A stretch of 64,000 nucleotides of DNA from Macrostomum lignano (GCA_002269645.1 NIVC01001533.1:208877-272876); one strand, 5' to 3'. Shown: positions 1,401 through 61,825, counted from the stretch's first letter. Numbers and translations are program-made. The notes: generated by a model not told the origin, from the letters alone.

Positions 1401-1576
1401 TCTTTTAAAAAATGATCATTTTATGTTCATTTTATATCCTACGCGCAATCGTACATAGTGATATACAGTGCCTAAAAATAATAAAATGGCACAGCTCGAC
1501 TCATAGGCTTTACGAATCCATTCTATCATTTTAGCTTTATGTGTAACTTGTAACTAATGTAACTAAAACACAAAAC

Positions 1577-4328: not shown

Positions 4329-4492
4329 GCAGATGTGCAACCGACAGCTCAGCCGCAGCTATATTGCGCGGCGCATCTGAAAGCTGCGTACGGCTGTTCA
4401 GTCTATAAGGACTGGGGGGTCGCCACACACACACCTTCAATTGCCCCAGCTAATGCTGGCACCCATTTTAAATCTGGGTGAACTGAAGCAAT
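4329..4492 (-). mobile_element. SINE family A, partial copy (core and 3' tail)
   Basis: Near-identical to 52091-52240 and to the reverse complement of 20456-20556. Confidence 0.8.
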
Positions 4493-7574: not shown

Positions 7575-8300
<726 letters not shown>

Positions 8301-16800: not shown

Positions 16801-16991
16801 CCGCGGCACGTGTTGCACGGGCCCATGTTCAGCGCCAGACTCGTGCAACTGTTGCGGCGAGAGAGCATTCCATTCTTCAAAATAACTTCTACCGACCTTA
16901 CCAGAAGATTGTTAAAAAGACAGAAAAATGCTAGACTGTAAAGTTTGAAACTAGTGCCAGCACAAATCAGCGCATACTCTCGACAATAGCT

Positions 16992-19800: not shown

Positions 19801-20444
19801 TGACTGACTGACTGACTGACTGACTGACTGACTGACTGACTGACTGACTGACTGACTGACTGACTGACTGACTGACTGACTGACTGACTGACTGACTGAC
19901 TGACTGACTGACTGACTGACTGACTGACTGACTGACTGACTGACTGACTGACTGACTGACTGACTGACTGACTGACTGACTGACTGACTGACTGACTGAC
20001 TGACTGACTGACTGACTGACTGACTGACTGACTGACTGACTGACTGACTGACTGACTGACTGACTGACTGACTGACTGACTGACTGACTGACTGACTGAC
20101 TGACTGACTGACTGACTGACTGACTGACTGACTGACTGACTGACTGACTGACTGACTGACTGACTGACTGACTGACTGACTGACTGACTGACTGACTGAC
20201 TGACTGACTGACTGACTGACTGACTGACTGACTGACTGACTGACTGACTGACTGACTGACTGACTGACTGACTGACTGACTGACTGACTGACTGACTGAC
20301 TGACTGACTGACTGACTGACTGACTGACTGACTGACTGACTGACTGACTGACTGACTGACTGACTGACTGACTGACTGACTGACTGACTGACTGACTGAC
20401 TGACTGACTGACTGACTGACTGACTGACTGACTGACTGACTGAC
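19801..20444. repeat. Perfect (TGAC)n microsatellite, about 644 bp
   Basis: Direct reading. Confidence 0.99.
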
Positions 20445-23133: not shown

Positions 23134-26100
23134 ATGGCTCAGGTATGTAGTTTTTGCGTCTCTTGTTGACACGATTTGATTTTAGATGAATAAACTTAGA
23201 GAGCCTTTTCATATTGCTTGCTCTGGTTCCAGAACCAGAACCAATTTGTGAAGTATAACTTTTTGTCTCCATAACTAGAGGGAGATACGTGCTATAAAGT
23301 TTTTATTATTGAATGACAATCGCCAAGAAGAAAGTGAAAAATTGTGCTAAGTTAGGTTGTTAAGGCAGTCAAATATTAACAGAGTTTAATAGTTATACTG
23401 CTGTTTTTCTTGGAATTCCGAACCGATTCTGGTTCTGGAATTGGTAATATGAAAAGGCCCAGAGTAGGTCCTATGACTAGGCCTGCCCTAAATTTTATCT
23501 TAGTTAGGCCTAACTATCTTTAAAGCTAAGCTAATCAATGTTTATTGAATTGTTTCATTTTTCGTCAGCTATACAGTTTGTCAACACATTAGCTTTCTAT
23601 AAAAATCCACATATTTGTGGGACATTTCATTACCTCTACAGAAATGAGTCATTTCGAAGGTGCCCGCGCCCTCCTTTATCTCTTTTATTTAAATTATTTC
23701 CTTTATTCTCCTTTATCTCCTTTATCTCTTTTATTTAGAAGATTTTTGGGACTCTCTCTTTTATTTTAGCCACTTTAGCTCCTAGCACTTGTGGGGAAAT
23801 CCAAAAATCGGGGGCAAGTTTTATGAAAATTCGTTTTTTGGCAATTTGAAAGCAATAAAGCTATAAAATAAATTTATTCAAGTTTTTAAAACGTTAAAAA
23901 GTCTATTAAAGCACAAATTATTTTCGTATAGCTTTATTTTTAATAAAATGATTTGTTAAAACGGTAAGTTTAATTACGACCTAAAATGAGTCTAATGAAA
24001 ATGATTGAAAAGCTATAATAATGTATTTTATTAACTTTAACTATCTTATAATGTTACACTCTATAATTCTACAACATATTTAACATTATTTTAAGGTTTT
24101 ATTTGTTTATCACTTTCGTTACTCTTGACAACGTGCATTTTGTAGAGTTCGTTTGCAATAAATTGTATTCAACGTAAGTTTATTATTTAAACATACAAAT
24201 TCCCGTAAGGATCGGAAAATTGCATTTTACTCAGCTTCTACTAAAGCGATTTGGAAAATTCTTTTTTTCCTGCATACACGCCGCGATGATACATGTTTTA
24301 GTGTAATTTCATTTTTCTTCGTCGCTTAATAAGCATACAGTAAGCATCTGATTTGGAAGCCGGGTAACACATTGGAATTCCCATAAGGATTGGAAAATTG
24401 CATTTTACTCAGCTTCTACTGAAGCGATTTGGAAAATTCTTTTTTTCCTGCATACACGCCGCGATGATACATGTTTTAGTGTAATTTCATTGTTCTTCGT
24501 CGCTTAATAAGCATACAGTAAGCATCTTATTTGGAAGCCGGGTAACACATTGGAATTCCCATAAGGATTGGAAAATTGCATTTTACTCAGCTTCTACTGA
24601 AGCGATTTGGAAAATTCTTTTTTTCCTGCATACACGCCGCGATGATACATGTTTTAGTGTAATTTCATTGTTCTTCGTCGCTTAATAAGCATACAGTAAG
24701 CATCTGATTTGGAAGCCGGGTAACACATTGGAATTCCCATAAGGATAGGAAAATTGCATTTTACTCAGCTTCTACTGAAGCGATTTGGAAAATTCTTTTT
24801 TTCCTGCATACACGCCGCGATGATACATGTTTTAGTGTAATTTCATTGTTCTTCGTCGCTTAATGAGCATACAGTAAGCATCTGATTTGGATGCCGGGTT
24901 CACATTTTGTGGTACCATTTTTTACCCAAAATTTTTAAGTCTAAATATAGGCATATTACAAATACTAATACTATGCAAGTTGATATTTAAATGAAAGAAA
25001 ACAACTTAAAGATTATTTTGCAACAAGGAATTAGCGATATATTTACTTTTAGAAAAAGATGTTTGCTGGCAAACTTTGCACTTTATATTAGTATGAATTT
25101 TTGCGAGTTTATATGGTTTTAGAAAAACTTTGAAATCCTTAGAAATACTTCATCTTTTTGAATTGAATAAAAAGTAAAACACAGATTACTTTCTGTTTTG
25201 TAAGTAGTAAAAAAATTAGCCTTCTCTAAGGCCTACAAGTCTTAAAATTAATTGTTTAATAATGAAAAAAAGTGAAACAAAAAATTGCAAATCGGTCAAC
25301 TCGGACTTTCAAAATGCTTTTTTGTGGTTTTTTCTTATTTATTCAACAATATAAAGCATGAAAACAATAGTTTTTATCCAGAACTATTTTCTAAGGACCT
25401 ATCTATCTTTCAAAAACCTTTTTTAGATACATTACTTTCCATCGAATGTCCGCAGATTTGTTTTACTGTTTTATCCCACGTTTTTGGATTTCGCCTTGTA
25501 CTTAATGTGTTGTTACTTTAGGGTCCTTTTAAATAATCATTTTTAAGACTATTTTCCTAGGCAAAGTTATGTAGAAAAATAGTTTATAAGTCTCAACAAA
25601 GGTTTGTATATATGATTAGTTAATATTTGAACAAACTTTAAAGCAGCAACCCTAGATTAGCCACAATATTAGATATGTGGAACTGTGGAGCTAGAAATAT
25701 ACAATTTCTTCTTAGGACTGCAAATTAGCTAGAAAGATGATATGATCAAAGTAGTCAACAAATAGGCCACAGAATAAAACAACCATAAGAGTATTATGTC
25801 CCTTGAGAGTACAACTGGGAGAGTACATGAGTACAACTGGCTTTTAAAGCAAGGATTGGTAGATTTTTACCTTAAAGGCCAGATAAAGAATCCAGCTAAT
25901 TGCTGCAAGGGCAGATAAAAATGGAAAGAAGAATGAATAGACAATAAGAGAAAAAAGAAGTAAGAGAAGGGATAGGAGAATAGATAAAAATATAAGAAGA
26001 GACAGGAGGGTAAGGAGAGAGAGTAGAGAAGAGGGAGGAAGGAAAAGGAGTGCAAGGACAATGGAAGGGAAAAGAGGCAAATAAGAAAGACAAGAAGAGA

Positions 26101-29100
26101 GAGGAGAGATGATATGAGAGAGAGAGATATAAAAGAAAAAAGAGGAAAGAGGAGAGAGGAGAAAGATGAGAGAAAAGAGATTAAAAAGGAGAGATAATAG
26201 GGAAGAGAAGAGAGGAGATAGAGGGGATAGCAAAGGAAAGAGAAAAGAAGAGGGGAGAGATGAGAGAAAAGATAAGAGATCCCAGAGAGGATATAGGAAA
26301 TAGTAGAAAAAAGAATAGAGATAAGCAAGATGAGAGAGAAAAGAAAAGAATAAAGAATAGAGATAAGCAAGATGAGAGAGAAGAGAAAAGAATAAAGAAT
26401 AGAGATAAGCAAGATAAGAGAGAAGAGAAAAGAATAAAGAGGATAAGAGAATGGGAAAAATAGAAAAGAGATGAAAGGAAAGATAGAAGAGAGGAGACAA
26501 AAAAGATAGAAGTTTCAGAGGAGCCAAAAGACATAGAGATGCAGAGGCAAAAGGCCAGAGTTTGCCTATACAGGCCTTAGACAGACATTGCCTGTCATTG
26601 TTACATTACCAAATTAAATCTCCTTTATTTTGGGGTCAGTCAAACAGTTTCCTTTATTTTACTTTCTCAAAATGTGCCAGCACCCTGCATTTTGTCTATA
26701 TATTTCTTTATTACATTGACATAGATTCCTACTTTTCTGGGCCTATAATCCTATATGTAGTAGGTGGTTGGCCTATATAAAGGAATTTTAGCAAGAGTTA
26801 TTATAATTTATAGTATTGAGATAGAAGGCCTTTATGTTTAATAGATGTAATAGCAGCAAAAATTTGCTGCTTTGCACATTATGCATAGGCCTATTGGTGC
26901 ATGACTAAGACCGCCACATACCAAGATTGCCATAATACTATTATTGGCTCCTAGTATTGAGGGGAGCTACTAATCTTCTAGCATTGCTATTCCTCTTATA
27001 AATTCCTCTCTTGCAGGCTTGTCCTGTTAGCTATCCAGTCCTATCCATTTATCTCTTCTTTAGCACCATTCAATAATACATTGAGCCAAATTCCTCTCTC
27101 AGCTCCTCAAGTGTGGCAGTCTTGGTCCTACACCAGCCTATTTATATTTAAAAAGCAGCACAAGATTGAGGGGCCTATGGAGGTGCAAAAAGGTAGTGTG
27201 ACCATACTTAGGATCATGTCATGTATGCTGGAAATTTCTGGCGCACATTTGGGACAGCTGGCATACACTTGGTGTACAAAATTTTTGAAAGGGTCTTCTG
27301 GCATACACCTTGGCATATATACAATTGGCGCACCCTGCATGGCGCACACACATGGTACACACTGCATGGCGCACATGCATGGCGCACACTGGCTAGAAGA
27401 GACTGCGCCACGGCTACTACGAAAGACAAATCAAAGAATGTAAAGTATGTGAAGCGTGAAATTTTGCACAAAATTTAACAATGATTGTGCAAATATATTG
27501 TAATGACAATATACAACTGTTGCTTTATTTTAAATATTCTCTAAATCGTGTTTTATTTCTCCTTTTTATAATTTATTTTTGAAATTAAAATATAAATCTT
27601 CAAATCCTCAATTTATAATTTTTACTTGCAATTACACAAACATTACAACTTACAATATATTGTGATTAGGATTTAGGACTGGCACACCTGGCGCACTTGT
27701 GCATTTTGCCTAGCATACCTGGCTTCTGGTGCACACATAGCATGATCCTGACTATGGGTGTAATAAACTTTGCCAACCCACTGGCTTAGTGAGCTGGCTA
27801 GCTTGGTGCACCCATCCCACCTTAGCTAGACAGAGATTGGGGGGTTTCAAGTATGGCTATATTGGTGCTTGCCAGTTGCATATAGGCCTATTCTGGCAAA
27901 TTTCTTGAAATAATTCAACAAGTGCTCTAAGAAATCTAGGAATGGTTTTAGTGAACAAGTTTCTATAGTTCAAAAACAAGCTGCAAACAAGTTCAAAAAA
28001 GTTGCTCTCTCCTTATAATGTGCTTCTATTTATACTAAAAAATTACATATTGCCAAATACTTATAACAAATTTTACAACTTGAAAATATTTTGCATATTG
28101 TAACAAAAGGAATATTTATTTAATGCTAATTTGAAAGCAACATTTCCTAGAAACATAATTAATAATCTAAAATGACTTTAAGTGATACTATTAATTAGGT
28201 ATCATAAAATATTGTCTATAGATTCTAAAAACAAGTGGTTACATCTTTAAAATCTAAAATTCAGATTTCATGACTGAATGTCCACTTCTTGTGGAATTTC
28301 CCATATGTTTAATTATTATAATGTTAAATTGCTATTTGGCATTCACTATACATGACTATCAACAATCAAATGGTTTGTAATTTCAATTGGCACCTCCTAG
28401 ACCTAGTTATTTTTGCATCACAGTTTTAGGCATATAATGCCAAATGACATGACGATTTCGACAAAAAAGTCCAATTGATGGAGCGACAGAAAAATATAAT
28501 TAAATGTTTTTTGCACCCTCCCAATTTGCTTTGCCACTCAAGCCACTGCGAGTTCTTGTCACCGGTGCCGCCGGCCAGATTGCCTACTCCCTGCTGTTCC
28601 CCATCGCCAATGGCGACGTGTTCGGCAAGGAGCAGCCTATTGTCCTGGTCATGCTCGACATCCCCCAGATGGTTGGCATCCTTGAGGGCGTCTGCATGGA
28701 GCTGCAGGATTGCGCTCTGCCTCTCCTCAAGGAGGTGATCGCCACCGACAAGGAGGAAGTGGCCTTCAAGGATCTGGATTACGCCCTGCTGGTTGGCGCC
28801 ATGCCCCGCCGCGAGGGCATGGAGCGCAAAGATCTGCTCAAGGCCAACGTCAAGATCTTTCAATCGCAGGGTCGTGCGCTGGACCAGTATGCTAAGAAGA
28901 CCTGCAAGGTGAGCGGGATTCTTTTACCCTAGCAACTAATTTTTACTATGCCATTTTCTGCACTGTGAACTATCCAGGTTGTGAAGAGAAACCCTACAGT
29001 GGAATTTCGTTTCTTAGAAAACACATCCCATCTCCATAGTGTATTTTTCGCGCACACCCAAGCGTCCGAAGGTTTTCTAAGAAACAAGATTACGGATCTG

Positions 29101-31568
29101 TCTACGTAAGTAATTTTCGATTAAATCACGGCTAATTAAATTACTTGGGAACAAAATATAGAGCCCATATAACGCCGCAGACTATAATTTAGCGCCACAG
29201 GCTAGATTTTAGCGCCACAGGCTAGATTTTAGCGCCACAGGCTAGATTTTAGCGCCGCAGACTATAATTTAGCGCCACAGGCTAGATTTTAGCGCCACAG
29301 ACTAGATTTTAGCGCCACAGGCTTGATTTTAGCGCCACACGCTAGATTTTAGCGCCACAGGCTTGATTTTAGCGCCACACGCTAGATTTTAGCGCCACAG
29401 GCTAGATTTTAGCGCCACAGGCTAGATTTTAGCGTACATGCTAGATTTTAGCGCTACAGGCTAGATTTTAGCGCCACAGGCTAGATTTTAGCGCTACAGT
29501 CTAGATTTTAGCGTCACAGACTAGACTTAAGCGCCACAGGCTAAATTTTTAGCGCCAATTTAGCGCTTTAGATTGAAAACTTTAATGGTCAGATCTCTTT
29601 TGGAGGGGTCATGACCCTCTCCGGGCTACGCCAATGTTACCATTCCAAAATCTCGCAGGTGGTGGTTGTTGGCAACCCGGCCAACACCAACGCCCTGATC
29701 TGCAGCAAATTCGCGCCCAGCATCCCGGCTAAGAATTTCTCGGCCCTGACTAGGCTGGATCAGAACCGCGCCCGCGCCCAGATCGCCGCCTATTTGGGCC
29801 TGCCCTGCAACAGCGTCAGCCGCACTGTCATCTGGGGCAACCATTCCAACACGCAGTTCCCCGACGCTAGCAACGGCGTTGTTCGCGGCCTCGACGGCGT
29901 CGAGAAGTCTGTCTATGACGCTGTGGCTAATGAGGAATGGCTGAAGGGCAAGTTTCTAACTACCGTGCAGCAGCGCGGCGCCGCCGTTATCAAGGTAAAT
30001 CTATTATTTTATTGCATAGCAACTGCCTGTTTTAGGCGTATACTAAATACTATACCTCATACATGCGCAACAGTCGGCCGATCCGGCCGACCGATTTGGC
30101 GGCCAACCAAGGAAGTCGCAAAAATGCCCACCCAAAAAAACACCAAAGTAGTAGTACTAAGTAGCTGACGAGGCATTGCGGCTTAATAAGACAGTCATAG
30201 TTACTCCTGCCGTTTACCCAAAGTTGCGTTAATTTTGCTTTTGGGTTTTTTACATGTAAGTCGCATTTTGGCCAAAAACTACGTCGCATTTTTGTTAAAA
30301 CTAAGTCGCACGGCCGACCGAATTTTGGAGGTTGCGCATGTATGCTATACCTCAACTACATACATAGACTCCGTTACTCAATAGCGTGTCTCTATAATAC
30401 TTTCAGTAGCTCTCTAAAGTTTCAGAGTCTAGCTGTCATTGCTAAGTCGACGAAAAGAAACGTGCATAGAGTAGATAAAAACGGAGCATCTCAATTCATG
30501 CGGGTTTTTCGTAGTTTAGCGTCAAACTGTGAATAGTTGATCGACTTTTCAGTGATTCAGTTTGCAAAATTTATAGGTTACGCTAAGACCATGTACCCTG
30601 TTTTATCTTTAAGACTAGTTTACAGAAAACTCTAGTAATATTCAGCTTTTAGTTTCCCCTAAGAAATTAGGCTGACGTTATCTTTTTTCTTGTCTGCGTT
30701 GTTTCTCTTAAGATAACTGTTTTAGTGGTAACACCGCTTCTTCGGTTTAATCTTTGATAGTGTATGTGTGTGTGTGTGCATTGCATGTTTCAGTATGATT
30801 TCGCATGTCCTAGCTCTGACGGTCAACTTTTAAACTCTTAAATAAGCCTTGAAAAGACCGATTGTTGTAGCTTTCCAGCCAAGAAGGAAGCCTTTTGTCT
30901 ATACGAAGGCTTTGACTGTACAATACATTGTTACTTATGTTGCATATGATTGATCAGCTGGTTGCTCACCATACTACTCTGGGAAAGGCTCTGGAAGAAC
31001 ACAAGCTTGTCTCGCGCTCAGTAACTAAGGCGTTTTTGTTTAGGCTGTGTGCGCCCTGGCGGCATTACTGCCCATTCCGCCGACTCCCCTGAACAGGCAC
31101 ACACGTATGCAGTCATACGCATAGCCTCAGGAGTGTACAGCTGCTTCCTAACTTTATTTATCGGAAAATTTATTTGGCTGCACTGGGAATCGAGCCTTGA
31201 CCGCTGGCACATCAGAGCGCCGCGCCAGACTACTGGCCCCCTAATTAATAAATTACTATATTGTTATTTCTCAGGCCCGCAAGCTCAGCAGCGCCATGTC
31301 GGCCGCCAAAGCTATCTGCGACCACGCCCGCGACTGGCATTTCGGCACGCCGGCCAGCGACTTCGTTAGCATGGCCGTCATCTCCGACGGAAACGGCTAC
31401 GGTGTGCAGAATAACCTGATGTACAGCTTCCCGCTGACTATTAGCAACGGCGAGTGGCGCATCGTTGAGGGCTTGAATCTCAACGACTGGGCTAAGGAGA
31501 AGCTGAAGGCTACGGAGGCTGAGCTGATCGAGGAGCGTGACACCGCGCTCAGCGTGTGCGAGGCTTGA
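23134..31568 (+). CDS. MDH1: Cytosolic malate dehydrogenase, 334 aa, 4 exons
   Basis: Exons 23134-23142 (ATG GCT CAG|gtatgt, inferred), 28543-28908, 29659-29994, 31275-31568. Motifs: [78 protein letters not shown]. Phases are consistent; exon 1 is less certain than the others. Confidence 0.93.
23201..23460. mobile_element. MITE-like element in MDH1 intron 1
   Basis: Termini GAGCCTTTTCATATT and AATATGAAAAGGCCC are inverted; subterminal TTCCAGAACCAGAA / TTCTGGTTCTGGAA are also inverted; AGA flanks both ends (possible 3-bp TSD). Confidence 0.65.
24200..24900. repeat. Four near-identical 178-bp tandem units
   Basis: TTCCC(G/A)TAAGG recurs at 24200, 24378, 24556 and 24734. Confidence 0.95.
25900..26530. 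repeat. GA-rich low-complexity tract
   Basis: Almost pure purine on the plus strand. Confidence 0.85.
29173..29567. repeat. 20-bp minisatellite (TTTAGCGCCACAGGCTAGAT)n in MDH1 intron 2
   Basis: About 19 units. Confidence 0.95.
30058..30344 (+). mobile_element. Non-autonomous DNA transposon, 287 bp, 14-bp TIR and 8-bp TSD
   Basis: CATACATGCGCAAC at 30058-30071 and GTTGCGCATGTATG at 30331-30344; CTATACCT duplicated at 30050-30057 and 30345-30352. Confidence 0.92.
31043..31238 (-). mobile_element. SINE family B (tRNA-like head) in MDH1 intron 3
   Basis: Shares GGAATCGAGCC..G..CGCTGGCACATCAGAGCGCCGCGC.AGAC.ACT and GCAGTCATACGCA with 42075-42314; the minus strand has A-box-like and B-box-like (GGCTCGATTCC) motifs. 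Confidence 0.65.
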
Positions 31569-31696
31569 ACTATCTTCTAGCTGTTGTTGGCTGAATGTCA
31601 ACTAGGATTGAGACTAAGACAATGCCCCTCCCCTAGTAAACTGTTCTGTCGTGTGTCCTTAGTTGTCTCCCCTCTAGGTACATGCATTATACTCGT

Positions 31697-31702
31697 AATA
31701 AA
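31697..31702 (+). promoter_or_regulatory. Candidate MDH1 polyadenylation signal AATAAA
   Basis: First AATAAA after the MDH1 stop, about 130 nt downstream. Confidence 0.45.
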
Positions 31703-33010
31703 TAGGAAATTGGTGTTCCGAAATTCTCTTAAGTGTATTTCAATTTGGCTGCAACTGAAGCTCTCTTTGTCGCGTCGGTCGGAACAGCCGGTTCCTCCCA
31801 TTGCCCAGCGGCAGTAGTGGGTTAGCTTTTAATTAGCTCTTGGTTGTCGCGATTGTTCAGATTGCTTCAACACAGTTTAAATTTAACTTGGTAGTGTGGC
31901 ATCGTTTAGTTTAGACTGACTGCATATGTATTGATTATATTTAACTCCCCAGAATTGCCTAGTAGATAGACTGTGTTTCCATCCTTTGTTACTCGCTTAA
32001 TAACAGTTGAAGCAAATCGTTATCTGAAGATCTGCTTCTATCCACCACAATAATATAATATTCTTTTTCAATAGTTAATGCACTATAATGCTATTATTTC
32101 TTAATTCAAGAATAACCCCGTGACACTGGTAGTTTCCCTAATGTGTTTTTAGTTTCTACCAGTTTAATAGCCTATGAAGCTCAATTTTTAATTAGCACTA
32201 TAGAATCTTTGTTCTGCAACTCCAAGTCCCAGACTAAAATTGTGCATCTAATGAGCTATTGCTATAGGAAAAATAAATCTTGAAAGTTAGAAAAAACGTA
32301 GTGTTTCGTTCGAGTCTTATTAGTTGCCCCTAAATGTGATTAATAACCGTTCATTGTTACAATTTTCTTTTCCGCGTGCGGAATAAAAACATGCTGATGC
32401 TGAGCGCATTCGTCCTTCGCATCGCGTAAGTCCGGATCACATCTAGATGCTACAATACTAAGTAATCAAGTATCGCGACTTATTGCACCTGCAGTTTAAT
32501 GGTCCTAAAGTTATTGGGGTGATATAGCCAGTTATATCATCTATCGTTAGTCACATAGCCAGCCAGACGGTTGATTCTTGATGGGGCAAGCCCAGGGCGC
32601 CAGCATCAAAGAGCGTTACAGCTGCTCATTGATCATTAAGATCTATGATTTCTTTTAAAAGCAGTATTGTTTGAACAATTGCAACTACTCTTTCGTTTGA
32701 ATACATCGTTACTTGCATTAAGAAAATGTAGAACCGGAACTGAATTCGTTACACACTTGCTTGTACGTGTGGTCAATAAAGTATTAAACCCGAAAATACA
32801 AAGCAATGGCGTTTAGTTAATCAGAAATATGTTTATAATTTGTTTAATATTATAATTTTATTATAACCGTTTTTGTTTTTAAAAGGCCGTAACGAGTTTT
32901 TAAATAACGTCAAGTCTTAAATTTCAAGTCGCGCGGCGGTGAGGTCCCACAAACGCATTGTGTAGTTTTTTTGTGTTTTAGTATATTTTTTTAATTGTTG
33001 CTCAAGACAT

Positions 33011-33023
33011 ATCTTATTTTTAG
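33011..33023 (+). promoter_or_regulatory. Candidate 3' splice / SL trans-splice acceptor 13 nt upstream of the ATAD3 ATG
   Basis: ATCTTATTTTTAG|TGAAATTTTTGGA-ATG. Confidence 0.45.
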
Positions 33024-33036
33024 TGAAATTTTTGGA

Positions 33037-47964: not shown

Positions 47965-48474
47965 ATGCAATCGTTAGAACTATCTCCGATGGTTTGTGTC
48001 TTTTATATACAATTTATAAACTGTTTGCTAGGTACAATTTTCCAACTTTATGAATCATTTATTAGCAGTCTGTCGTATTGCTTGAATACACTTTTTAATA
48101 GCTAAAAAATAATGTTAGTGCAAGTTGTGAGCTAATTTTTTATAAACTTGCATTTTCAATTACTGGCGCATTCTGAGACAGTCCAACCAGCTTATTGACT
48201 CCTCACTGACGCCTGTTGTCATTGACAACCGTCTCCAATGCCCACAAACCTTACTTAATCTATAGCACCATCTTGTTCAACCCTGAGTCGAGTAGAGGCA
48301 AATAATTATTGTTTCTGGTTATTGCTTTGCTTATATTCTCTAGGCTGACTATTTGAATTTAACTATATTTTTAGCTTTGAATTTGTTAAATAAAACCAAT
48401 AAGCCATTTGGCCAACTCTCATTGCAGTTTTCTTCTTTTATTTCAAACTAGGTATTCTTGCGGTCTTAGAAATT

Positions 48475-50726: not shown

Positions 50727-50852
50727 CAGGCTGCTCTAGCTCAGCAGCCATCGAGCCTGCTAAAAGCGGAGCTGCATTAAACTCTGTGTTGCAATTGTCT
50801 GCATGCCAATCGCATTAGTTGGGCACGATCCGCAGCCTGCGGCAACTCGCAC

Positions 50853-53800
50853 ATGGACGGCAGCAGCGCAAGCTCGGCCGCTCAGCAGCAGCAGGAGGAG
50901 TGCAACAAGGAGACGGCCAGCCTTGTCGGCTTGGAGCTGCTTGCCGCACTGCGGGCTGAACGCTCAGAATCCGCCGCAGACGTGGCTGCTGGTGCCGACA
51001 AGCGTCCAACAGACCTCGACTTGCTGCTCGCTGACGGTCGCTTATTAAGCGTCCATTCCACCGTGATGCGAGTGTTCAGCGAGTTCTTTCGAGTCATGCT
51101 GTCTGTTGAAATGCGCGAACGCCGCGAAGGTCGAGTAGATCTCAGTCATTTGGAAGCTAGGCACGTGGCTTATTGCATCGACCTGCTGTACGGCGATGTA
51201 CAACCGCTTGATAAAGATTCCGTGCTGGATGTGGCTTATGTGGCAAACTTTCTCCAGCTACCGGTTGCCACCCGGCATTGTCAGCGGTTATTAATGCGCT
51301 GTTTTACTACGGCCGAATTGGACTCAGCTTACGCATTGTTTGAGCGTTTGAGTTGGAACGAGTTTATGGATGAGCTTAATCGCCAGGTGAGCAGCTGGCT
51401 GCTGTAGCAACAGAGGCTTGGTTAGTTTTCTCTAGAGAGAGAGAGAGAGAGAGATTCAATTTAGACTACTGAGAAAAGTAGACGAATAAAGATTTGAATC
51501 GTAAAATCTCTTGCATAGACCACAGATACTAGAATAACTCTCTCGTAGATAGGCCACTCAGGCCTATCTTCATCAGGCCTACTTAGTAAAACAGCTTTCT
51601 ACTTTCAGTTCAGTAGCAATGAAGAATACATAAGCTATATTATAAGAATAAAGTCAGCTGAGATAACTTTGATAAGTTAAGAAGCCCAAGCTTGCAGACG
51701 CAAACGGCTTGCTAATTGGTTCAGTCATAATGTACATTAGCCACTGAAATGTACAAGGCAGACTTAGGCAGGGATTGAGGTTCTGTGTGGAGTTCTGTGT
51801 GTGTGAACTGACTGACGAAAGCAAACAAACACAAACTGCTTTTGGTCTGTCTGCGCGAGGTTAGACCCCCCCCTCCTCACTTCTAGTGTGTCACACACCC
51901 CAGTCCAACTGTAAAGCAAGCCTTAAAATCATCAAGAGACGATTAAAAAATAAAATAGCGGTATATAAAACGACGATAAAATGACTGACAGCGTTTAGTA
52001 GGCAATTAAAAACGTTTGTAAAGTACTCGGGAGTAAGAACTGGGTATAAAAGAACTAACGCTCTTAAAATGACGGAACCAGAATTGTATGACCGACAGCT
52101 CAGCCGCAGCTATTGCGCGGCGCATCTGAAAGCTGCGTACGGCTGTTCAGTCCAAGGACTGGAGGGGGGTCGCCACACACAGCCTCAATTACCCCAGCTA
52201 ATGCTGGCACCCATTTTACAGCTGGGTGAACTGAAGCAATGCAGAGTTGTTTTGCTCCAGGACACATTGTTCCAATAGGATCGGGAATCGAACCCCCAAC
52301 CTTGAAGTCGCGAGTCCGACGCTCTAACAGCTAGGCTGCAACCCCCTTAAAAATTAGAAGAAAACAGTTGCCATGACAACTCACTCATCCCCGCCCTTGC
52401 TAACCAAATCGCTCAGGTTCGCCTGGACAGCTGGGAGGATGCCAATCGGGTTCATAAATTTTCATTCGACCGGCTTCTGAGCGTTCTGAGCCGACCGGAG
52501 CTATCCGTCTCGGGCGAGGACCGCGTCCTGGACGTCTGCAGTCGCTGGATGGACGATCAGCGTATCGGCGTTGGCAACGGGCCAGCAACTGCCGCTCAGC
52601 GAATCCGCCTGCTGTCCTGCATCCGGCAGCTGTATCTGGGGCCGGATTGTCTCACTAAATTTCGAACTCTGGCCGCCGCCTGCGGTTTCCCCGGCTCTTT
52701 GCCGGCTCAGCCGCCTCTGAATACTCCGTTCCGGCGGCTGGAATTGGCCGCCGCCGGTGCCGCTCCAGCCGACCTGCTGATGCCTCGCTGTTGTCAGGAA
52801 CGGATGCTGTTCATATCCGGACCCGACATTCAGGTAAAATTGATTGACAGGCGCTCAATCATTGGCTTAGTTAGTCACTCACTCTCATTCATGAGCTCGC
52901 TCATAGGCTATGTAATCATTTAGTCACTCACTCTCATTCATGAGCTCACTCATAGGCTATGTAATCATTTAGTCACTCACTCTCATTCATGAGCTCACTC
53001 ATAGGCTATGTAATCATTTAGTCTCTCACTCTCATTCATGAGCTCACTCATAGGCTATGTAATCATTTAGTCTCTCACTCTCATTCATGAGCTCACTCAT
53101 AGGCTATGTAATCATTTAGTCTCTCACTCTCATTCATGAGCTTACTCATAGGCTATGTAATCATTTAGTCACTCACTCTCATTCATGAGCTCACCCATAG
53201 GCTATGTAATCATTTAGTCACTCACTCTCATTCATAAGCTCACCCATAGGCTATGTAATCATTTAGTCACTCACTCTCATTCATGAGCTCACCCATAGGC
53301 TATGTAATCATTTAGTCACTCACTCTCATTCATGAGCTCACCCATAGGCTATGTAATCATTTAGTCACTCACTCTCATTCATGAGCTCACCCATAGGCTA
53401 TGTAATCATTTAGTCACTCACTCTCATTCATGAGCTCACTCATAGGCTATGTAATCATTTAGTCACTCACTCTCATTCATGAGCTCACTCATAGGCTATG
53501 TAATCATTTAGTCACTCACTCTCATTCATGAGCTCACTCATAGGCTATGTAATCATTTAGTCTCTCACTCTCATTCATGAGCTCATTCATAGGCTATGTA
53601 ATCATTTAGTCACTCACTCTCATTCATGAGCTCACTCATAGGCTATGTAATCATTTAGTCTCTCACTCTCATTCATGAGCTCATTCATAGGCTATGTAAT
53701 CATTTAGTCACTCACTCTCATTCATGAGCTCACTCATAGGCTATGTAATCATTTAGTCACTCACTCTCATTCATGAGCTCATTCATAGGCTATGTAATCA

Positions 53801-56692
53801 TTTAGTCACTCACTCTCATTCATGAGCTCACTCATAGGCTATGTAATCATTTAGTCACTCACTCTCATTCATGAGCTCACTCATAGGCTATGTAATCATT
53901 TAGTCACTCACTCTCATTCATGAGCTCATTCATAGGCTATGTAATCATTTAGTCACTCACTCTCATTCATGAGCTCATTCATAGGCTATGTAATCATTTA
54001 GTCACTCACTCTCATTCATGAGCTCACTCATAGGCTACATAATTCATTCGATTATTCACTTATAAATTCATGAACTCAGTCATTTCATTTCATGAACTAA
54101 ATCATTCATGTTTGTCCTTAAGAATCAATTATCATAGCTAGAATTCATAGCTAGAATTGTAATTGACCTTAACCTGTTGTTTGCAGGGCGCCTGTCTATC
54201 ATTATTTTTTGTGGACCCATTAGAATTGAAGCAGCAAGGTCAACAGCAGCAGCTCACTCTGCACTGCGAACAGCTTGACGCTCCGGAATTTAAGATGCGC
54301 ACAGTTGAACTGCAGTGCTGCGTTGGTGGCGGCGGATGCGTGTTGTTCCTACATGAGACTGTCATGAATGTGATGTACAGTTTCGTGTCCATGCCGGCGC
54401 CTTCTAGTCTGTACGCCATCGACCTGGCCGGAGTGCTGCCCGTGCTGCGCTATCAAGGCGTACCCGATTCGCTAATTGGATTCCGGATGCTCTGTCTAGG
54501 CAGCCGTCTGTACGCCTTTGGCGGCCGCGACTGTCGCATGACTATCCGCGATCTCGTGTTCGTGTTTGATAGCGTCACGCCTGGCGGCACTATGAAATGG
54601 GATCACGTGTTTTATCCCTTGGAGAGCACTGGCGGTAGGAAGGTAAGGATTTGTTCTGAATTTGCGGCCTGGAGTGCTTAATACTAAATTTGATTTTGCA
54701 TCATTTCCCGCTCTCAGGTGCCCGTACTGTTGCCTCAGCCAATGAGCGAGCTGGCTGTACTAGCTGTGCCGTCTGCCGCCCTGCCCCAGTCCGCCCCCGA
54801 CTCGGTCAACAAAGCTGCCAAGCTGGACAGAGCAGCGGCGGCGTCCCGCCACGTGCTGCTCTCCGGTGGGCGAACTAACGGCGACGAAGAGGGCGATCCT
54901 AGGCCTGCGCTGAACTGTCTGTACAGGTTAGGTTGGGTCCTCGGTGCGGTTATGATCATCCTGAATCGAATCACCCCGAATCAAACTGGCATCAACCCAA
55001 ATCCCCAGATCAACTGGCATCATCCCAGATCCCCAATCAAACTGGCTTCATCCCAGATCCCCAATCAAACTGGCTTCACCCCAGATCCCCAATCAAACTG
55101 GCTTCATCCCAGATCCCCAATCAAACTGGCTTCATCCCAGATCCCCAATCAAAATGGCTTCATCCCAGATCCCCAATCAAAATGGCTTCATCCCAGATCC
55201 CCAATCAAAATGGCTTCACCCCAGATCCCCAATCAAACTGGCTTCATCCCAGATCCCCAATCAAAATGGCTTCACCCCAGATCCCCAATCAAACTGGCTT
55301 CACCCCAGATCCCCAATCAAAATGGCTTCATCCCAGATCCCCAATCAAAATGGCTTCACCCCAGATCCCCAATCAAAATGGCTTCATCCCAGATCCCCAA
55401 TCAAACTGGCTTCATCCCAGATCCCCAATCAAACTGGCTTCATCCCAGATCCCCAATCAAACTGGCTTCACCCCAGATCCCCAATCAAAATGGCTTCATC
55501 CCAGATCCCCAATCAAAATGGCATCATCCCAGATCCCCAAATCAACTGGCATCACCCCAGATCCCCAAATCAACTGGCATCATCCCAGATCCCCAATCAA
55601 ACTGGCTTCGCCCCAGATCCCCAATCAAACTGGCTTCATCCCAGATCCCCAATCAAACTGGCTTCATCCCAGATCCCCAATCAAAATGGCTTCACCCCAG
55701 ATCCCCAATCAAACTGGCTTCACCCCAGATCCCCAATCAAACTGGCATCATCCCAGATCCCCAAATCAACTGGCATCACCCCAGATCCCCAAATCAACTG
55801 GCTTCACCCCAGATCCCCAATCAAACTGGCTTCATCCCAGATCCCCAATCAAACTGGCTTCATCCCAGATCCCCAATCAAACTGGCTTCATCCCAGATCC
55901 CCAATCAAACTGGCTTCACCCCAGATCCCCAATCAAACTGGCTTCATCCCAGATCCCCAATCAAACTGGCTTCATCCCAGATCCCCAATCAAACTGGCTT
56001 CACCCCAGATCCCCAATCAAACTGGCTTCACCCCAGATCCCCAATCAAACTGGCTTCACCCCAGATCCCCAATCAAACTGGCTTCATCCCAGATCCCCAA
56101 TCAAACTGGCTTCACCCCAGATCCCCAATCAAACTGGCACCCTCTTCCCTGCGGCCCCCCCAGATACGACAGCCATCGAATGGAGTTCAGCCGCCTGGCG
56201 GACATGAACCGCAGCCGATTCGGCCACAGCATGCACCTGGTCGGCAATCGAATATTCGTATTCGGCGGCACGCCCGATTCATCGGAGAGCCCGTTCTCAT
56301 TCGCCGAGTATTACTCTCCGGACACCGACCAGTGGACGGTGGTGTCCGCTCTGGAGAGCCTCGGCCCGTCCCGCCCGCTGACATCAATTTTGGGCGGCCG
56401 AATTTTCTACATTGGCCGGCCGCACGGCCAAGAGATGCTGCGCGACGGCCTGTGGGAATTCGAATTGGACAACGGCTACGAAGGGGTGACATCGTTGCAT
56501 CACCTGCGCGACCTGCCCGTTGCTATGCGAGACGCCACCAGAAGGGAGACTCACTGCGTGGCCCTGTCCGTGAACGTTAGTCCGTCCGGTTTGCGCTCCC
56601 TGCGTCAGCTGCTACTGTCGCCTAGCGAAGATGCCGATGCCAGGTCGAGCGAGAGCGGCGGTGGCTCGAGACGGGCGTCCCGTGCGCACTAA
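50853..56692 (+). CDS. BTB-BACK-Kelch (KLHL-like) protein, 714 aa, 5 exons
   Basis: Exons 50853-51386, 52417-52833, 54187-54642, 54718-54926, 56164-56692 (2145 nt). BTB: TDLDLL...VHSTVM..FSEFFRVMLSVEMRE...LLY...ANFLQL. BACK: LSVSGEDRV...W. Kelch: LYAFGG, LLSGG, RFGHSM..GNRIFVFGG...EYYSPDTDQW. Confidence 0.88.
52091..52339 (-). mobile_element. SINE family A, most complete copy: tRNA-like head, central core and 3' tail
   Basis: Minus strand reads GCAGCCTAGCTGTTAGAGCGTCGGACTC...GGGTTCGATTCCC (A/B boxes), then TGCTTCAGTTCACCCAGCTGTAAAATGGGTGCC, then the tail shared with the 4329 and 20456 copies. Confidence 0.82.
52868..54038. repeat. 49-bp minisatellite filling Kelch intron 2
   Basis: (TAGTCACTCACTCTCATTCATGAGCTCACTCATAGGCTATGTAATCATT)n, about 24 units. 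Confidence 0.97.
54965..56140. repeat. 28-bp minisatellite (CCCAGATCCCCAATCAAACTGGCTTCAT)n filling Kelch intron 4
   Basis: About 41 units. Confidence 0.97.
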
Positions 56693-56814
56693 TTTGAACT
56701 AGTTGTGTCTATTAGTTTACTCTTCTTGATTTTTCCTGTGTCTGGGGGTTTAGCATTTCCTGTGTACGTTTTAATTAACTGTGTAGTACTGCGTTGCTAA
56801 TATTTTATGGTGTC

Positions 56815-57130
56815 AGTAGTATATATAGCTAGTATTCTTTCAATGATGTCAGTATGTATAGCTAGTATTCTATAGTGTCAGTAGTACATACAACTAGTAT
56901 TCTATAGTGTCAGTAGTACATACAACTAGTATTCTATAGTGTCAGTAGTACATACAACTAGTATTCTATAGTGTCAGTAGTACATACAACTAGTATTCTA
57001 TAGTGTCAGTAGTACATACAACTAGTATTCTATAGTTTGAGTAGTATATATAGCTAATATTCTATGGTGTCAGTAGTATATATTATAGCTAGTATTCTTT
57101 GGTGTCAGTAGTATATATAGTGTTTTATAT
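56815..57130. repeat. 32-bp minisatellite (CTAGTATTCTATAGTGTCAGTAGTACATACAA)n downstream of the Kelch stop
   Basis: About 5 clean units plus degenerate flanking copies. Confidence 0.88.
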
Positions 57131-58126
57131 GCTCAGTACCGTCTATAGCGTCAGTGTCAGTCAGTAGTATCTAGAGTTTCAAAAGTGCCTAATGTCTCAG
57201 TCACGTGTGTCAAATATTTCTATTATCTCGATGTGTGCAGAGTCACTTGTCAAAACTTGTTCAAAAGTATTGCTACACCTCCTGTTGGTGTCTGGCAGTA
57301 GTATCTGTCGTTTCAATTGGCTTGTACAGTCGACATTTAGCCTTTTTTAATGCTGGCGAATTGCCTAACCCTTATTAACTGCTCCAACCTGTCATGAAAG
57401 CTGCTATCCCCTGACTGCTGCACTCGCGTACGAGCTACTAGTTTCAGTAGTATGCACGCGTTAAATGTTAGTTTTAGCGCGCACCGGTGCAATAGAGCCT
57501 TTCAACTGGTAAAGATTTCTTCAATTGTTGTACTTTTATACCAGCTCAGCCACCAGCCGTCTCTTCTGCCTAGTCCTGCCACTTAATCCCCTGGCAACTG
57601 ACCGACTTGAGCTGGTTTGAACCATGAGATTGTTTGTTTGTTATGCCTCTTGTTGCTGTGTTCAAGCTGTTTTAATTAATAATATAATCAAGCGCCAATC
57701 CTGATTTAAAGCTGTTAACCCGATCTATTCGTGTAATTAATTATTTATCTGTTCTGAAAGAGTCACTGTAAGCAAAATTATGCGCTTCTAAGATCGATTT
57801 TTCCGGATTCAATCCGAAACTTTTTATTTTTTCTCTAGCCACTGTTCCTTTTATATATTAATATCAGTAGTATTTGTACGTTTTTAACGTCATTAATTGT
57901 GTTCTTGTACTTATAATTTCTAATCGTTACTTTAGTTTTTTTTAAAGAAGTAAAATTCCAAGCCTGCTATTTGTGTTTAATAATCGTCTAACGACATCTG
58001 GTTTTCAACTGATTCAATCTGACCGATTGGTGTGTTAACTAATAAACTGCAAATTGGCTTTGTATTGTCAACTTTTGCAGACTTGTATTGTGTGCGACTG
58101 ATCTGATCTACTTACTTCGTTATATC

Positions 58127-58844
58127 TGCTGGGCCAGCCTCCCAGATCCTCAGTTGCTGGGCCAGCCTCCCAGATCCTCAGTTGCTGGGCCAGCCTCCCA
58201 GATCCTCAGTTGCTGGGCCAGCCTCCCAGATCCTCAGTTGCTGGTCCAGCCTCCCAGATCCTCAGTTGCTGGGCCAGCCTCCCAGATCCTCAGTTGCTGG
58301 GCCAGCCTCCCAGATCCTCAGTTGCTGGGCCAGCCTCCCAGATCCTCAGTTGCTGGGCCAGCCTCCCAGATCCTCAGTTGCTGGGCCAGCCTCCCAGATC
58401 CTCAGTTGCTGGGCCAGCCTCCCAGATCCTCAGTTGCTGGGCCAGCCTCCCAGATCCTCAGTTGCTGGGCCAGCCTCCCAGATCCTCAGTTGCTGGGCCA
58501 GCCTCCCAGATCCTCAGTTGCTGGGCCAGCCTCCCAGATCCTCAGTTTCTGGCCAGCCTCCCAGATCCTCAGTTGCTGGGCCAGCCTCCCAGATCCTCAG
58601 TTGCTGGGCCAGCCTCCCAGATCCTCAGTTGCTGGGCCAGCCTCCCAGATCCTCAGTTGCTGGGCCAGCCTCCCAGATCCTCAGTTTCTGGCCAGCCTCC
58701 CAGATCCTCAGTTGCTGGGCCAGCCTCCCAGATCCTCAGTTGCTGGGCCAGCCTCCCAGATCCTCAGTTGCTGGGCCAGCCTCCCAGATCCTCAGTTGCT
58801 GGGTCAGCCTCCCAGATCCTCAGTTGCTGGGCCAGCCTCCCAGA
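58127..58844. repeat. 28-bp minisatellite (GCTGGGCCAGCCTCCCAGATCCTCAGTT)n immediately upstream of NFS1
   Basis: About 25 units. Confidence 0.97.
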
Positions 58845-58861
58845 AATATTTAGTGATAAAC

Positions 58862-58879
58862 TATTCCTTCTAAATTCAG
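58862..58879 (+). promoter_or_regulatory. Candidate 3' splice / SL trans-splice acceptor 9 nt upstream of the NFS1 ATG
   Basis: TATTCCTTCTAAATTCAG|CCGCTCAGC-ATG. Confidence 0.45.
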
Positions 58880-58888
58880 CCGCTCAGC

Positions 58889-61825
58889 ATGTCATCTCTG
58901 ACTGCGCTAACCGCTATTCACCGAGGCTGCCGAAGCTTGCTACTCATGCGCCAGTCGGCTCTTAGATGCAACTGGCAGCGCCTTCTGGGCACGGAGGCTG
59001 CCGCTGCTGCTACTGCTGCTCCGGCTAGCACCGATTCAACTCCGGCTGCTGGGGAGTCTCCATTCCGACCGCTGTATCTGGATCTTCAGGTGTGCTTTTT
59101 ATTGTTTCATTATTATACTCGTAATACAATATATACGTCATTCTCTGATTAGTCGAAAATGTGACAGGGTCTGATTGATTAAGAGTATAATAATTCGATT
59201 CTCTGATTGGTCATAAGAAACAGCGGCTGCTGTTCTCCAATTGGTCAAGGGAATGGCGGCTGCTGTTCTCCAATTGGTCAAGGGAATAGCGGCTGCTGTT
59301 CTCCGATTGGTTAAGGGAATAGTGGCTGCTGTTCTCCGATTGGTTAAGGGAATAGTGGCTGCTGTTTTCCAATTGGTCAAGGGAATGGCGGCTGCTGTTC
59401 TCCAATTGGTCAAGGGAATAGCGGCTGCTGTTCTCCAATTGGTCAAGGGAATAGCGGCTGCTGTTCTCCGATTGGTTAAGGGAATAGCGGCTGCTGTTCT
59501 CCGATTGGTTAAGGGAATAGCGGCTGCTGTTCTCCGATTGGTCAAGGGAATAGTGGCTGCTGTCCTCTGATTGGTAAGGGGAATAGCGGCTGCTGTTCTC
59601 CGATTGGTCAATGGAATGGCGGCTGCTGTTCTCAGATTGGTCAAGGGAATAGTGGCTGCTGTCCTCTGATTGGTAAGGGGAATAGCGGCTGCTGTTCTCC
59701 GATTGGTCAATGGAATGGCGGCTGCTGTTCTCAGATTGGTCAAGGGAATAGTGGCTGCTGTTCTCTGATTTGCCGGATCGAGTCGCTTTTCGTGCTCTCC
59801 CTAGTGTGTGAACTAAAACCGACACGATGTCCACACTTCTCTGAATTGCTCAAAAATAGGCGACGACTCCGCTGGATCCTCGTGTCCTGGACGCCATGCT
59901 GCCCTACTGTACCGGCCTGTTCGGCAACCCGCACTCTCGCTCACACGCCTACGGCTGGGAGACCGAGACCGCTGTTGAGAAGGCCAGAGCACAGGTGGCC
60001 CAGCTCATTGGCGCCGATCCCAAAGAGATTGTGTTCACTAGCGGCGCCACAGAGTCTAATAATATCGCTATTAAAGGCGTTGCCAGGTTCTACAAGTCAA
60101 GGAAGCGTCACCTCATTACTAGCCAGACTGAGCACAAGTGCGTGCTCGACTCGTGCCGCGCGCTAGAGTCCGAGGGATTCGAGGTTTGCTTGCCGAATTG
60201 TTCCTTGCTTTTGTCCAGGCCGCCACGGTGCCAGCCCTCCCCTTTGCCCAGGCCGCTACGGTGCCAGATCTTTGATCATGCCGCCATATCCCTCCTCGCT
60301 TATCTTTGATCATGCCGCCAAAACCCTCCACCACTTATCTTTGATCATGCCGCCATAACCCTCCCCCACTTATCTTTGATCATGCCGCCATAACCCTCCC
60401 CCACTTATCTTTGATCATGCCGCCATAACCCTCCCCACTTATCTTTGATCATGCCGCCATAACCCTCCCCCACTTATCTTTGATCATGCCGCCATAACCC
60501 TCCCCACTTACATGTATTTTTGATCATGCTGCCATAACCCTCCACCACTTATCTTTGATCATGCCGCCATAACCCTCCCCCACTTATCTTTGATCATGCC
60601 GCCAAAACCCTCCACCACTTATCTTTGATCATGCCGCCATAACCCTCCCCACTTATCTTTGATCATGCCGCCATAACCCTCCCCACTTACATGTATTTTT
60701 GATCATGCTGCCATAACCCTCCCCCACTTATCTTTAATCATACCGCCAAAACCCTCCACCACTTATCTTTGATCATGCCGCCATAACCCTCCACCACTTA
60801 TCTTTGATCATGCCGCCATAACCCTCCACCACTTATCTTTGATCATGCCGCCATAACCCTCCCTCACTTATCTTTGATCATGCCGCCATATCTTTGACCT
60901 AATTGATCCATCCTCTCACCCTCCGAGATTAGCTATGATAAATCTCTATATTCACCCAAACCGCCAGGTAACTTACCTGCCAGTGAAGCCGTCTGGTCTA
61001 CTAGACCTGGCCAGCCTAGAGTCCGCCATCCGCCCCGACACCGCCCTGGTGTCGGTCATGACAGTCAACAATGAAATCGGCGTCCGTCAGCCTGTTGAAA
61101 AGATCGGCGCCCTCTGCCGGTCCCGCGGCGTATTCTTTCACACAGACGCTGCTCAGGCAGTTGGCAAAATGCCAATCGACGTCAACGCCGCCTGCATCGA
61201 CCTGATGTCGATCTCCGGGCACAAGCTCTACGGCCCAAAAGGTGTCGGCGCTATCTACGTTCGTCGGCGTCCGCGCGTCCGACTGGAACCGTTGCAGAGC
61301 GGCGGCGGCCAGGAGCGCGGGATGCGATCTGGCACGGTGCCAAGCTTCCTGGCCGTCGGCCTCGGCGCCGCCTGCCAGCTGGCCGGCCAAGAGATGGCCT
61401 TCGATGCCGAGCGGGTTGACCGGCTGTCCCAACGCCTAATCGATCGGATAGTCAGCCAGCTGAGTCACGTGGTGGTTAACGGCGACCGGGACAGCTGCTA
61501 TCCCGGCTGCGTTAATCTCAGCTTCGCCTGCGTCGAAGGCGAATCCCTGCTGATGGCGCTGAAAGACGTCGCCTTGTCGTCCGGCAGCGCGTGCACCTCG
61601 GCCAGCCTGGAGCCGTCCTACGTGCTCAGGGCTATTGGCGCCGATGAAGATCTGGCTCATTCCAGCATCCGCTTCGGGATTGGCCGGTTCACTACAGAGG
61701 CCGAGGTGGACTACACTGTTGACTTGTGCGTCAGGCAGGTCCGCCGGCTCAGGGAGCTCAGCCCGCTCTGGGAGATGGTGCAGGAGGGCGTCGATTTGAA
61801 GAGCATCCAGTGGACTCAGCATTGA
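58889..61825 (+). CDS. NFS1: Mitochondrial cysteine desulfurase NFS1, 460 aa, 3 exons
   Basis: Exons 58889-59089, 59860-60183, 60968-61825. R/L/S/A-rich presequence; RPLYLDLQ|[47 protein letters not shown] (PLP lysine), [17 protein letters not shown] (catalytic Cys), C-terminal IQWTQH. Confidence 0.96.
59220..59768. repeat. 33-bp minisatellite (GCGGCTGCTGTTCTCCGATTGGTCAAGGGAATA)n in NFS1 intron 1
   Basis: About 16 units. Confidence 0.95.
60285..60892. repeat. 34-35-bp minisatellite (CCACTTATCTTTGATCATGCCGCCATAACCCTCC)n in NFS1 intron 2
   Basis: About 17 units. Confidence 0.95.

Follow-up and report, generated by a model that had tools for sequence, protein, structure and literature searches.

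The final 64 kb of contig NIVC01001533.1 (positions 208877 to 272876; Macrostomum lignano assembly Mlig_3_7, GCA_002269645.1), which the stretch analyzed here matched base for base, are referred to below as the window (64,000 nucleotides [nt], with positions counted from its first letter). The window contains four genes, MDH1, ATAD3, a BTB-Kelch gene and NFS1, arranged head to tail on the plus strand, and we considered whether they are transcribed independently or, wholly or in part, as an operon resolved through spliced-leader (SL) trans-splicing. Exon models were built from six-frame translations and canonical GT/AG splice sites, and all four genes were found to be intact, with each identity backed by Pfam domains. 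The genes and the gaps between them are as follows:

23134-23142, 28543-28908, 29659-29994 and 31275-31568, plus strand: MDH1, cytosolic malate dehydrogenase, 334 residues; Pfam Ldh_1_N and Ldh_1_C
31569-33036, plus strand: gap 1, 1468 nt, without a tandem array
33037-47964, plus strand: ATAD3, mitochondrial AAA ATPase, seven coding exons, 597 residues; Pfam ATAD3_N and AAA
47965-50852, plus strand: gap 2, 2888 nt
50853-56692, plus strand: BTB-Kelch gene, five coding exons, 714 residues from the first Met; Pfam BTB and Kelch
56693-58888, plus strand: gap 3, 2196 nt
58889-59089, 59860-60183 and 60968-61825, plus strand: NFS1, mitochondrial cysteine desulfurase, 460 residues from the first Met; Pfam Aminotran_5

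The exon models and Pfam matches agreed with an initial annotation of this DNA, which had described four intact plus-strand genes with stop-to-ATG gaps of 1468, 2888 and 2196 nt, and the tandem arrays that it had placed in the second and third gaps were found again at their positions. The ATAD3 model was identical to NCBI protein PAA66771.1 (BOX15_Mlig006034g1), which has a complete coding sequence (CDS), and the BTB-Kelch and NFS1 models were identical to PAA66772.1 and the NCBI NFS1 protein, respectively, apart from extra N-terminal residues in those two 5'-partial entries. The NCBI proteins of ATAD3, Kelch and NFS1 are numbered consecutively (PAA66771/2/3), with no further gene called among them, and a six-frame scan, the NCBI gene calls and tRNA and Rfam searches revealed no other gene on either strand, no tRNA and no Rfam RNA in the gaps between the four genes. 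The cluster genes are thus adjacent and in the same orientation, as in the published definition of an M. lignano SL operon (PMC8629364). Four consecutive genes on one strand are not significant by themselves, and because tandem arrays fill 32% of the window (38% of the cluster region), introns included, their presence in the gaps is not informative alone. Two more paralogous copies of the locus were found, on NIVC01002553.1 (L001/L010) and on NIVC01000793.1 (L007/L009).

NFS1 and its start codon

The only SL of M. lignano is 35 nt long, with ...TTGCATG as its last bases (PMC8629364, PMC5730564), and its SL-containing reads carry …TTATTGCATG. The deposited gene boundaries of this species rest on RNA data that include trimmed SL reads (PMC5730564), and a 5'-partial CDS therefore means that the open reading frame (ORF) reaches the first base of the mRNA model. 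For the analysis of 5' ends, an acceptor-like site was defined as at least 9 pyrimidines in 12 positions followed by NAG. Such a site was present within 15 nt of approximately 8% of random noncoding positions in the window. An acceptor-like site before the ATG in two of two genes, ATAD3 and NFS1, is mildly above chance, and both upstream AG sites scored on par with the true internal acceptors of these genes. The features of the gap preceding NFS1 are as follows:

56797-57117 and 58127-58844, plus strand: tandem arrays, 1039 nt together
58041, plus strand: AATAAA, the only one in gap 3, 67 nt before the 58127-58844 array
58871-58873, plus strand: in-frame TAA, 9 nt upstream of the predicted NFS1 exon start
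58879, plus strand: end of the AG of the predicted NFS1 acceptor ...ttctaaattcAG, 35 nt past the array end

The pyrimidine-rich AG noted initially 9 nt before the NFS1 ATG was confirmed in position, the acceptor-like ...ctaaattcAG placing the exon start at 58880. The NFS1 CDS is 5'-partial in all three copies, starting with PLS... (the equivalent of 58880) in L001 and with LS... (58883) both here and in L007, so that the deposited CDS begins 0 to 3 nt past the predicted acceptor. Because the CDS is 5'-partial and an in-frame TAA occupies 58871-58873, the start of the NFS1 mRNA is confined to 58872-58883. The resulting leader of 6 to 9 nt would be abnormal for a capped primary transcript but is what SL addition normally leaves. 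When placed before 58880 (CCG CTC AGC ATG), the SL AUG is in frame and gives MPLSMSS....

At this position, an NFS1 transcript from a related species (Logan SRR30276812) carries a genomic ATG CCG CTG, and its codon opposite the window's ATG at 58889 is for Leu. The contig opens with GCATG, corresponding to the SL tail, followed by 32 nt aligning to window positions 58844-58879. A genomic ATG was also observed at that spot in paralog L001 (17211-17230; aaatcATGCCGCTC), and the window and L007 both have ttCAG followed directly by CCGCTC. On this evidence, NFS1 is likely to be trans-spliced at the AG ending at 58879, with the SL AUG replacing an ancestral genomic ATG, which if true would make the NFS1 start a tidy case of such replacement. 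The genomic ATG at 58889 could serve as an alternative start.

The M. lignano assembly was polished with RNA-seq reads (PMC5730564), and the CATG before the NFS1 exon in L001 was considered as a possible polishing artifact. It was dropped as evidence, since natural retention is at least as likely given the ATG of the related transcript. An 8-nt SL tail at 63810 was also rejected as a signal, being the same in all copies and at chance frequency.

The 28-nt unit of the 58127-58844 array (…GCCAGCCTCCCAGATCCTCAGT) carries pyrimidine-rich AG motifs, amounting to approximately 25 tandem acceptor-like sites ahead of the acceptor that is probably the real one. In the alignment with the related species, the AG closing the last unit coincides with the 5' end of the NFS1 mRNA.

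Spacers and the 5' ends of the upstream genes

In M. lignano operons, repeats lengthen the distances between genes, which have their mode near 100 bp once the repeats are subtracted, and a cut-off of 1 kb has been applied (PMC8629364). To compare the gaps of the cluster with these values, poly(A) cleavage was assumed to occur approximately 25 nt past AATAAA, and the repeat adjustment subtracted tandem arrays, not dispersed repeats. After removal of its arrays, gap 3 measured 1157 nt from stop to ATG and approximately 96 nt from its only AATAAA to the acceptor, and it falls within the 1-kb cut-off only if the AATAAA at 58041 is used. The features of gap 2 are as follows:

48389, plus strand: AATAAA, the only canonical one in gap 2, 424 nt past the ATAD3 stop and followed by a U-rich stretch
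48475-50747, plus strand: tandem array with a 44-nt unit, starting 65 nt after the AATAAA and ending 58 nt before the annotated Kelch mRNA start
50776, plus strand: ATTAAA
50800-50805, plus strand: TGCATG
approximately 50806-50814, plus strand: annotated 5' end of the Kelch mRNA

Without array sequence (2252 nt at 48475-50726), gap 2 measured 636 nt from stop to ATG, under the 1-kb operon cut-off, and the repeat-adjusted spacer from the AATAAA poly(A) site to the Kelch 5' end was about 120 to 140 nt. The NCBI Kelch CDS is 5'-partial. It begins at 50814 (ISW...) here and in L001, and the L007 CDS starts 6 nt upstream of that point (NRIS...), with the mRNA 5' end 39 to 47 nt before the ATG. The stretch at 50819-50853 that had been proposed as the site of SL addition does not agree with this boundary, as the AG ending at 50818 falls inside the annotated mRNA, whose start is at approximately 50806-50814. 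A pyrimidine-purine step was observed at both Kelch starts, with the ATTAAA at 50776 lying approximately 30 nt upstream. In a word-indexed search of 5.8 billion clusters, the BTB-Kelch protein matched a single cluster, BOX15_Mlig004235g1 (Macrostomum lignano), and no relative was detectable outside M. lignano.

The six bases before 50806 are TGCATG, the last six of the SL, both here and in L001 (9987-9992), and CCGCTG in L007 (3275-3280). A 201-nt alignment showed seven differences, four of which fall in the four adjacent columns of this site. As an alternative to a promoter-derived 5' end, the Kelch 5' end could be an SL site at which the acceptor was corrupted in the assembly by RNA-seq polishing, and the TGCATG at 50800-50805 may be a footprint of SL-bearing polishing reads, or chance. 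If the former were true, SL footprints left by polishing would mark trans-splice sites in the genome sequence itself.

The features of gap 1, upstream of ATAD3, are as follows:

31697, 32272, 32382 and 32775, plus strand: AATAAA hexamers
32426 and 32939, plus strand: donor-like GTAAGT and GTGAGG, respectively
32981 and 33023, plus strand: ends of acceptor-like AGs

The pyrimidine-rich AG reported 13 nt before the ATAD3 ATG was likewise confirmed in position (...cttatttttAG, ending at 33023), and an exon using it would begin at 33024. A transcript from 33024 would have no in-frame stop ahead of the ATG. The ATAD3 CDS is deposited as complete in all three copies, and because a complete CDS implies an upstream in-frame stop, the annotated mRNA start is not 33024, in conflict with the initial proposal of an SL acceptor there. 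An alternative acceptor, with 10 of 12 pyrimidines and its AG ending at 32981, would take in the in-frame TAA, and its use by ATAD3 is possible. A cis-spliced exon in the 5' untranslated region (UTR), employing the donors at 32426 or 32939, could equally account for the ATAD3 5' end and is a live alternative. The initial annotation had named cis-spliced 5' UTR exons as an observation that would speak against it, and good predicted donors do exist upstream of the ATAD3 acceptors. An ATAD3 transcript from a distant flatworm (L006) had no SL at its 5' end, which is uninformative. Intron 1 of ATAD3 contains two tandem arrays with 17-nt units, at 38313-38556 (TTTGCCAAAATTCCCAA) and 38727-38950 (TTGGCAAATTAGGAATT), which are roughly reverse complements of each other and form a large inverted pair.

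The first coding exon of MDH1 is only 9 nt long, ATGGCTCAG (MAQ), and is followed by a gtatgt donor and a 5.4-kb intron. This tiny exon, which was part of the initial annotation, was supported by a transcript from a related Macrostomum (Logan SRR28338165, 1958 nt) that encodes a 334-residue protein 93% identical to MDH1 and starting with MAQPLRV. The leader of that transcript is 48 nt long and non-SL. MDH1 was also intact in paralog L009 (1226-8530), with the same 9-nt first exon. The M. lignano MDH1 protein was missing from the NCBI annotation in all copies and from the searched protein collection, although at least two copies of the gene are intact and its ortholog is expressed in a related species. 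Depending on which of the four AATAAA hexamers is used, the gap 1 spacer from the MDH1 poly(A) site to the ATAD3 acceptors ranges from 182 to 1302 nt. In L010 (NIVC01002553.1), a 9.4-kb insertion (501-9912) lies between MDH1 and ATAD3, approximately 82 nt upstream of the ATAD3 ATG. It has terminal inverted repeats of approximately 770 nt built of 183-nt subrepeats, its two long ORFs (505 and 366 residues) had no Pfam match, and it is probably a DNA transposon. Such an insertion would be tolerable in an intron or an outron and is not decisive. MDH1 most likely has its own promoter, and a link between it and ATAD3 is unsupported.

Exact-protein look-ups in Logan for NFS1 (460/463/464 residues), ATAD3 (597) and MDH1 (334) returned NCBI/UniRef entries only and no M. 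lignano transcript contig, and the gene IDs, ATAD3, NFS1 and MDH1 were not found in the supplements of PMC5816591, PMC5730564 and PMC5173321.

Outside the cluster, aquaporin-like exons with NPA-type motifs (SGGHLNPAVS and GGSINPVRS) were observed at approximately 16900-18700 on the plus strand, in the orientation of the cluster and 4.4 kb ahead of MDH1 exon 1. The sole clear minus-strand gene of the window is a single-exon ORF of 444 residues at 5575-6909 encoding a rhodopsin-family G protein-coupled receptor (Pfam 7tm_1, E = 4e-21). Two very long, near-perfect tetranucleotide microsatellites were also present, (TCTA)x181 at 7575-8300 and (ACTG)x161 at 19799-20444.

Models of transcription

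The probability of each link between neighboring genes was estimated from published priors, spacer geometry and the 5'-end evidence. On this basis, the reading that we favor is a partial SL-type operon, not a four-gene unit, in which NFS1 would be trans-spliced and MDH1 separate, and we consider it about evenly balanced between being right and being wrong. That at least one downstream pair forms a true operon appears even or marginally better. Co-transcription of Kelch and NFS1 is a possibility falling just short of even, co-transcription of ATAD3 and Kelch is doubtful, and that of MDH1 and ATAD3 would be unlikely. In the partial operon, NFS1 would probably be co-transcribed with the upstream Kelch gene and possibly with ATAD3 too, and the one AATAAA located approximately 65 nt before each intergenic array would direct cleavage and polyadenylation of the upstream mRNA. 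NFS1 would probably then be matured by addition of the 35-nt SL at the AG ending at 58879, with the terminal AUG of the SL supplying the start of MPLSMSS.... The arrays would represent neutral expansions of an originally ~100-nt intercistronic spacer. The geometry of gaps 2 and 3 and the annotated NFS1 5' end fit such a repeat-inflated operon. The fuller scenario, in which the NFS1 start codon was handed from the genome to the SL and the arrays expanded inside ~100-nt spacers with the unit remaining unbroken, is put forward tentatively and would be rather unlikely as a whole. Of the co-transcribed unit proposed in the initial annotation, NFS1 and perhaps Kelch are thus plausible as downstream cistrons on the strength of geometry and the NFS1 5' end, but a single four-gene unit was not supported. 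Its mitochondrial theme was post hoc, as MDH1 is a cytosolic enzyme and no role is known for the Kelch gene.

Several observations weigh against a partial operon. The gene models, gap sizes, array and AATAAA positions and 5' limits of the annotated CDSs are established, whereas co-transcription is predicted from geometry alone and the poly(A) sites from hexamers only, and SL use at NFS1 is likewise inferred. The 5'-partial NFS1 starts could also be compatible with a tight cluster of transcription start sites (TSS). There is no AG ahead of the Kelch 5' end in any copy and the start shifts by 6 nt between copies, and by its sequence context this 5' end looks like a real TSS. SL addition at 50806 would moreover open an 81-codon out-of-frame ORF overlapping the Kelch start. 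The ATAD3-Kelch-NFS1 order is shared only by the three M. lignano copies, at least two of which also have MDH1 upstream, but because these recent paralogs are mutually 97 to 99% identical, this shared order says little about selection. In the two cestodes examined, Echinococcus multilocularis and Hymenolepis diminuta, the genes on either side of ATAD3 encode prenylcysteine oxidase and AHSA1 and lie on the opposite strand, with no MDH1, Kelch or NFS1 nearby. Synteny in related species had been suggested as a check, and the gene order was not shared by these cestodes, which indicates that the cluster does not represent an ancient operon of flatworms.

The transcript-cluster prefixes of ATAD3, Kelch and NFS1 also differ (Mlig006034, Mlig004235 and Mlig006032, respectively), showing that the published assembly did not join these genes. 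This is a weak negative, since transcriptional units defined from RNA-seq are prone to splitting where a spacer is rich in repeats (PMC8629364, PMC5730564). The locus tags (MligNNNNNN.gK) had been considered as denoting transcriptional unit and gene, and this interpretation was rejected because the prefix denotes transcripts clustered at 95% identity and g1 to g3 are paralogous copies, so that the tags give no sign of a common unit.

The four genes might instead be independent transcription units with their own promoters, the AGs of ATAD3 and NFS1 being either cis acceptors of short 5' UTR exons or monocistronic outron acceptors, a possibility that we take seriously but place below even. It is consistent with the donor-like GTAAGT (32426) and GTGAGG (32939) ahead of the ATAD3 acceptors and with the complete ATAD3 CDS, which implies that the mRNA extends beyond 33024 or has another exon. 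The Kelch 5' end without an AG and with ATTAAA at -30, the separate transcript-cluster names, the 9.4-kb insertion that one paralog tolerates 82 nt upstream of the ATAD3 ATG and the lack of synteny in cestodes point the same way, and most trans-spliced M. lignano genes are monocistronic, approximately 60% lying outside operons (PMC8629364). Independent promoters would, however, have scant unique sequence to occupy, approximately 58 nt from the array to the Kelch 5' end in gap 2 and approximately 35 nt from the array to the NFS1 acceptor in gap 3, and an NFS1 mRNA with its own TSS would carry a leader of 6 to 9 nt. The only AATAAA of the preceding gene lies approximately 65 nt before each array, and the repeat-adjusted spacers of approximately 100 to 140 nt correspond to the published operon mode (PMC8629364), both of which argue for linkage of the downstream genes.

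At the other extreme, a single promoter upstream of MDH1 could drive a 38-kb pre-mRNA of all four genes, with SL addition at 33024, near 50819-50853 and at 58880. The four genes are on the same strand with nothing intervening, acceptor-like sites precede ATAD3 and NFS1, and the related-species MDH1 leader is non-SL, as expected of a first cistron. M. lignano operons of up to nine genes are known, and 18% are led by a gene that is not trans-spliced (PMC8629364). The spacer from MDH1 to the ATAD3 acceptors would be approximately 180 to 225 nt if the AATAAA at 32775 serves MDH1. Nevertheless, we consider a four-gene operon very improbable. The complete CDS rules out an ATAD3 mRNA start at 33024, the Kelch 5' end does not coincide with an AG, and the 1468 nt of gap 1, which contain no repeats, exceed the 1-kb rule unless the MDH1 3' UTR is longer than approximately 470 nt. 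MDH1 is parted from ATAD3 by the 9.4-kb element in L010, and published operons comprise two genes in 75% of cases and three in 18% (PMC8629364). With three links that are each uncertain, the joint probability is low.

Comparison with known spliced leader operons

Operons in Caenorhabditis elegans are transcribed as polycistronic pre-mRNAs in which 3' end formation is coupled to trans-splicing across a spacer of ~100 nt, and they are enriched in mitochondrial and housekeeping genes. Unlike the SL2 operons of the nematode, M. lignano has one SL and no specialized SL2, and the raw spacers observed here measure 1.5 to 2.9 kb rather than the ~100 nt of an SL2-type operon. C. elegans also has SL1-type operons and hybrid operons with internal promoters, and one such promoter may be present at Kelch. 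Among flatworms, the second gene of the SL operons of Schistosoma mansoni and cestodes is trans-spliced, and the distance between cistrons has a median of ~99 bp (PMC12582326); the gene content of these operons differs from that of the cluster. Initiation at the flatworm SL AUG has been documented in schistosomes (Cheng et al. 2006, as cited in PMC9851317); the NFS1 exon at 58880 is similarly in frame with the SL AUG, its use here being predicted from sequence.

The closest likeness is to the repeat-expanded operons of M. lignano itself (Ustyantsev & Berezikov 2021, PMC8629364; Wudarski et al. 2017, PMC5730564), which belong to the same species, with its single SL, and share with the cluster conserved housekeeping neighbors on the same strand and an array-filled spacer. 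In this species approximately 30% of genes, and 45% of human-conserved genes, are trans-spliced, and approximately 15% lie in operons (PMC8629364, PMC5730564). The phenomenon is therefore already well described in M. lignano, and only the hand-over of the NFS1 start and the SL-like junction bases are mildly novel. If the partial operon is real, the cluster would be one more among the thousands already estimated in this species, and current understanding of trans-splicing would be unchanged. It would also offer a clear case in which minisatellites have lengthened the spacers 10- to 20-fold, and this would help in defining operons in repeat-rich genomes. The cluster differs from the described M. 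lignano operons in that its genes are named as separate transcript clusters and the Kelch 5' end lacks an AG, whereas its repeat-removed spacers in gaps 2 and 3, counted from the predicted poly(A) sites, lie at the published mode with approximately 100 to 140 nt.

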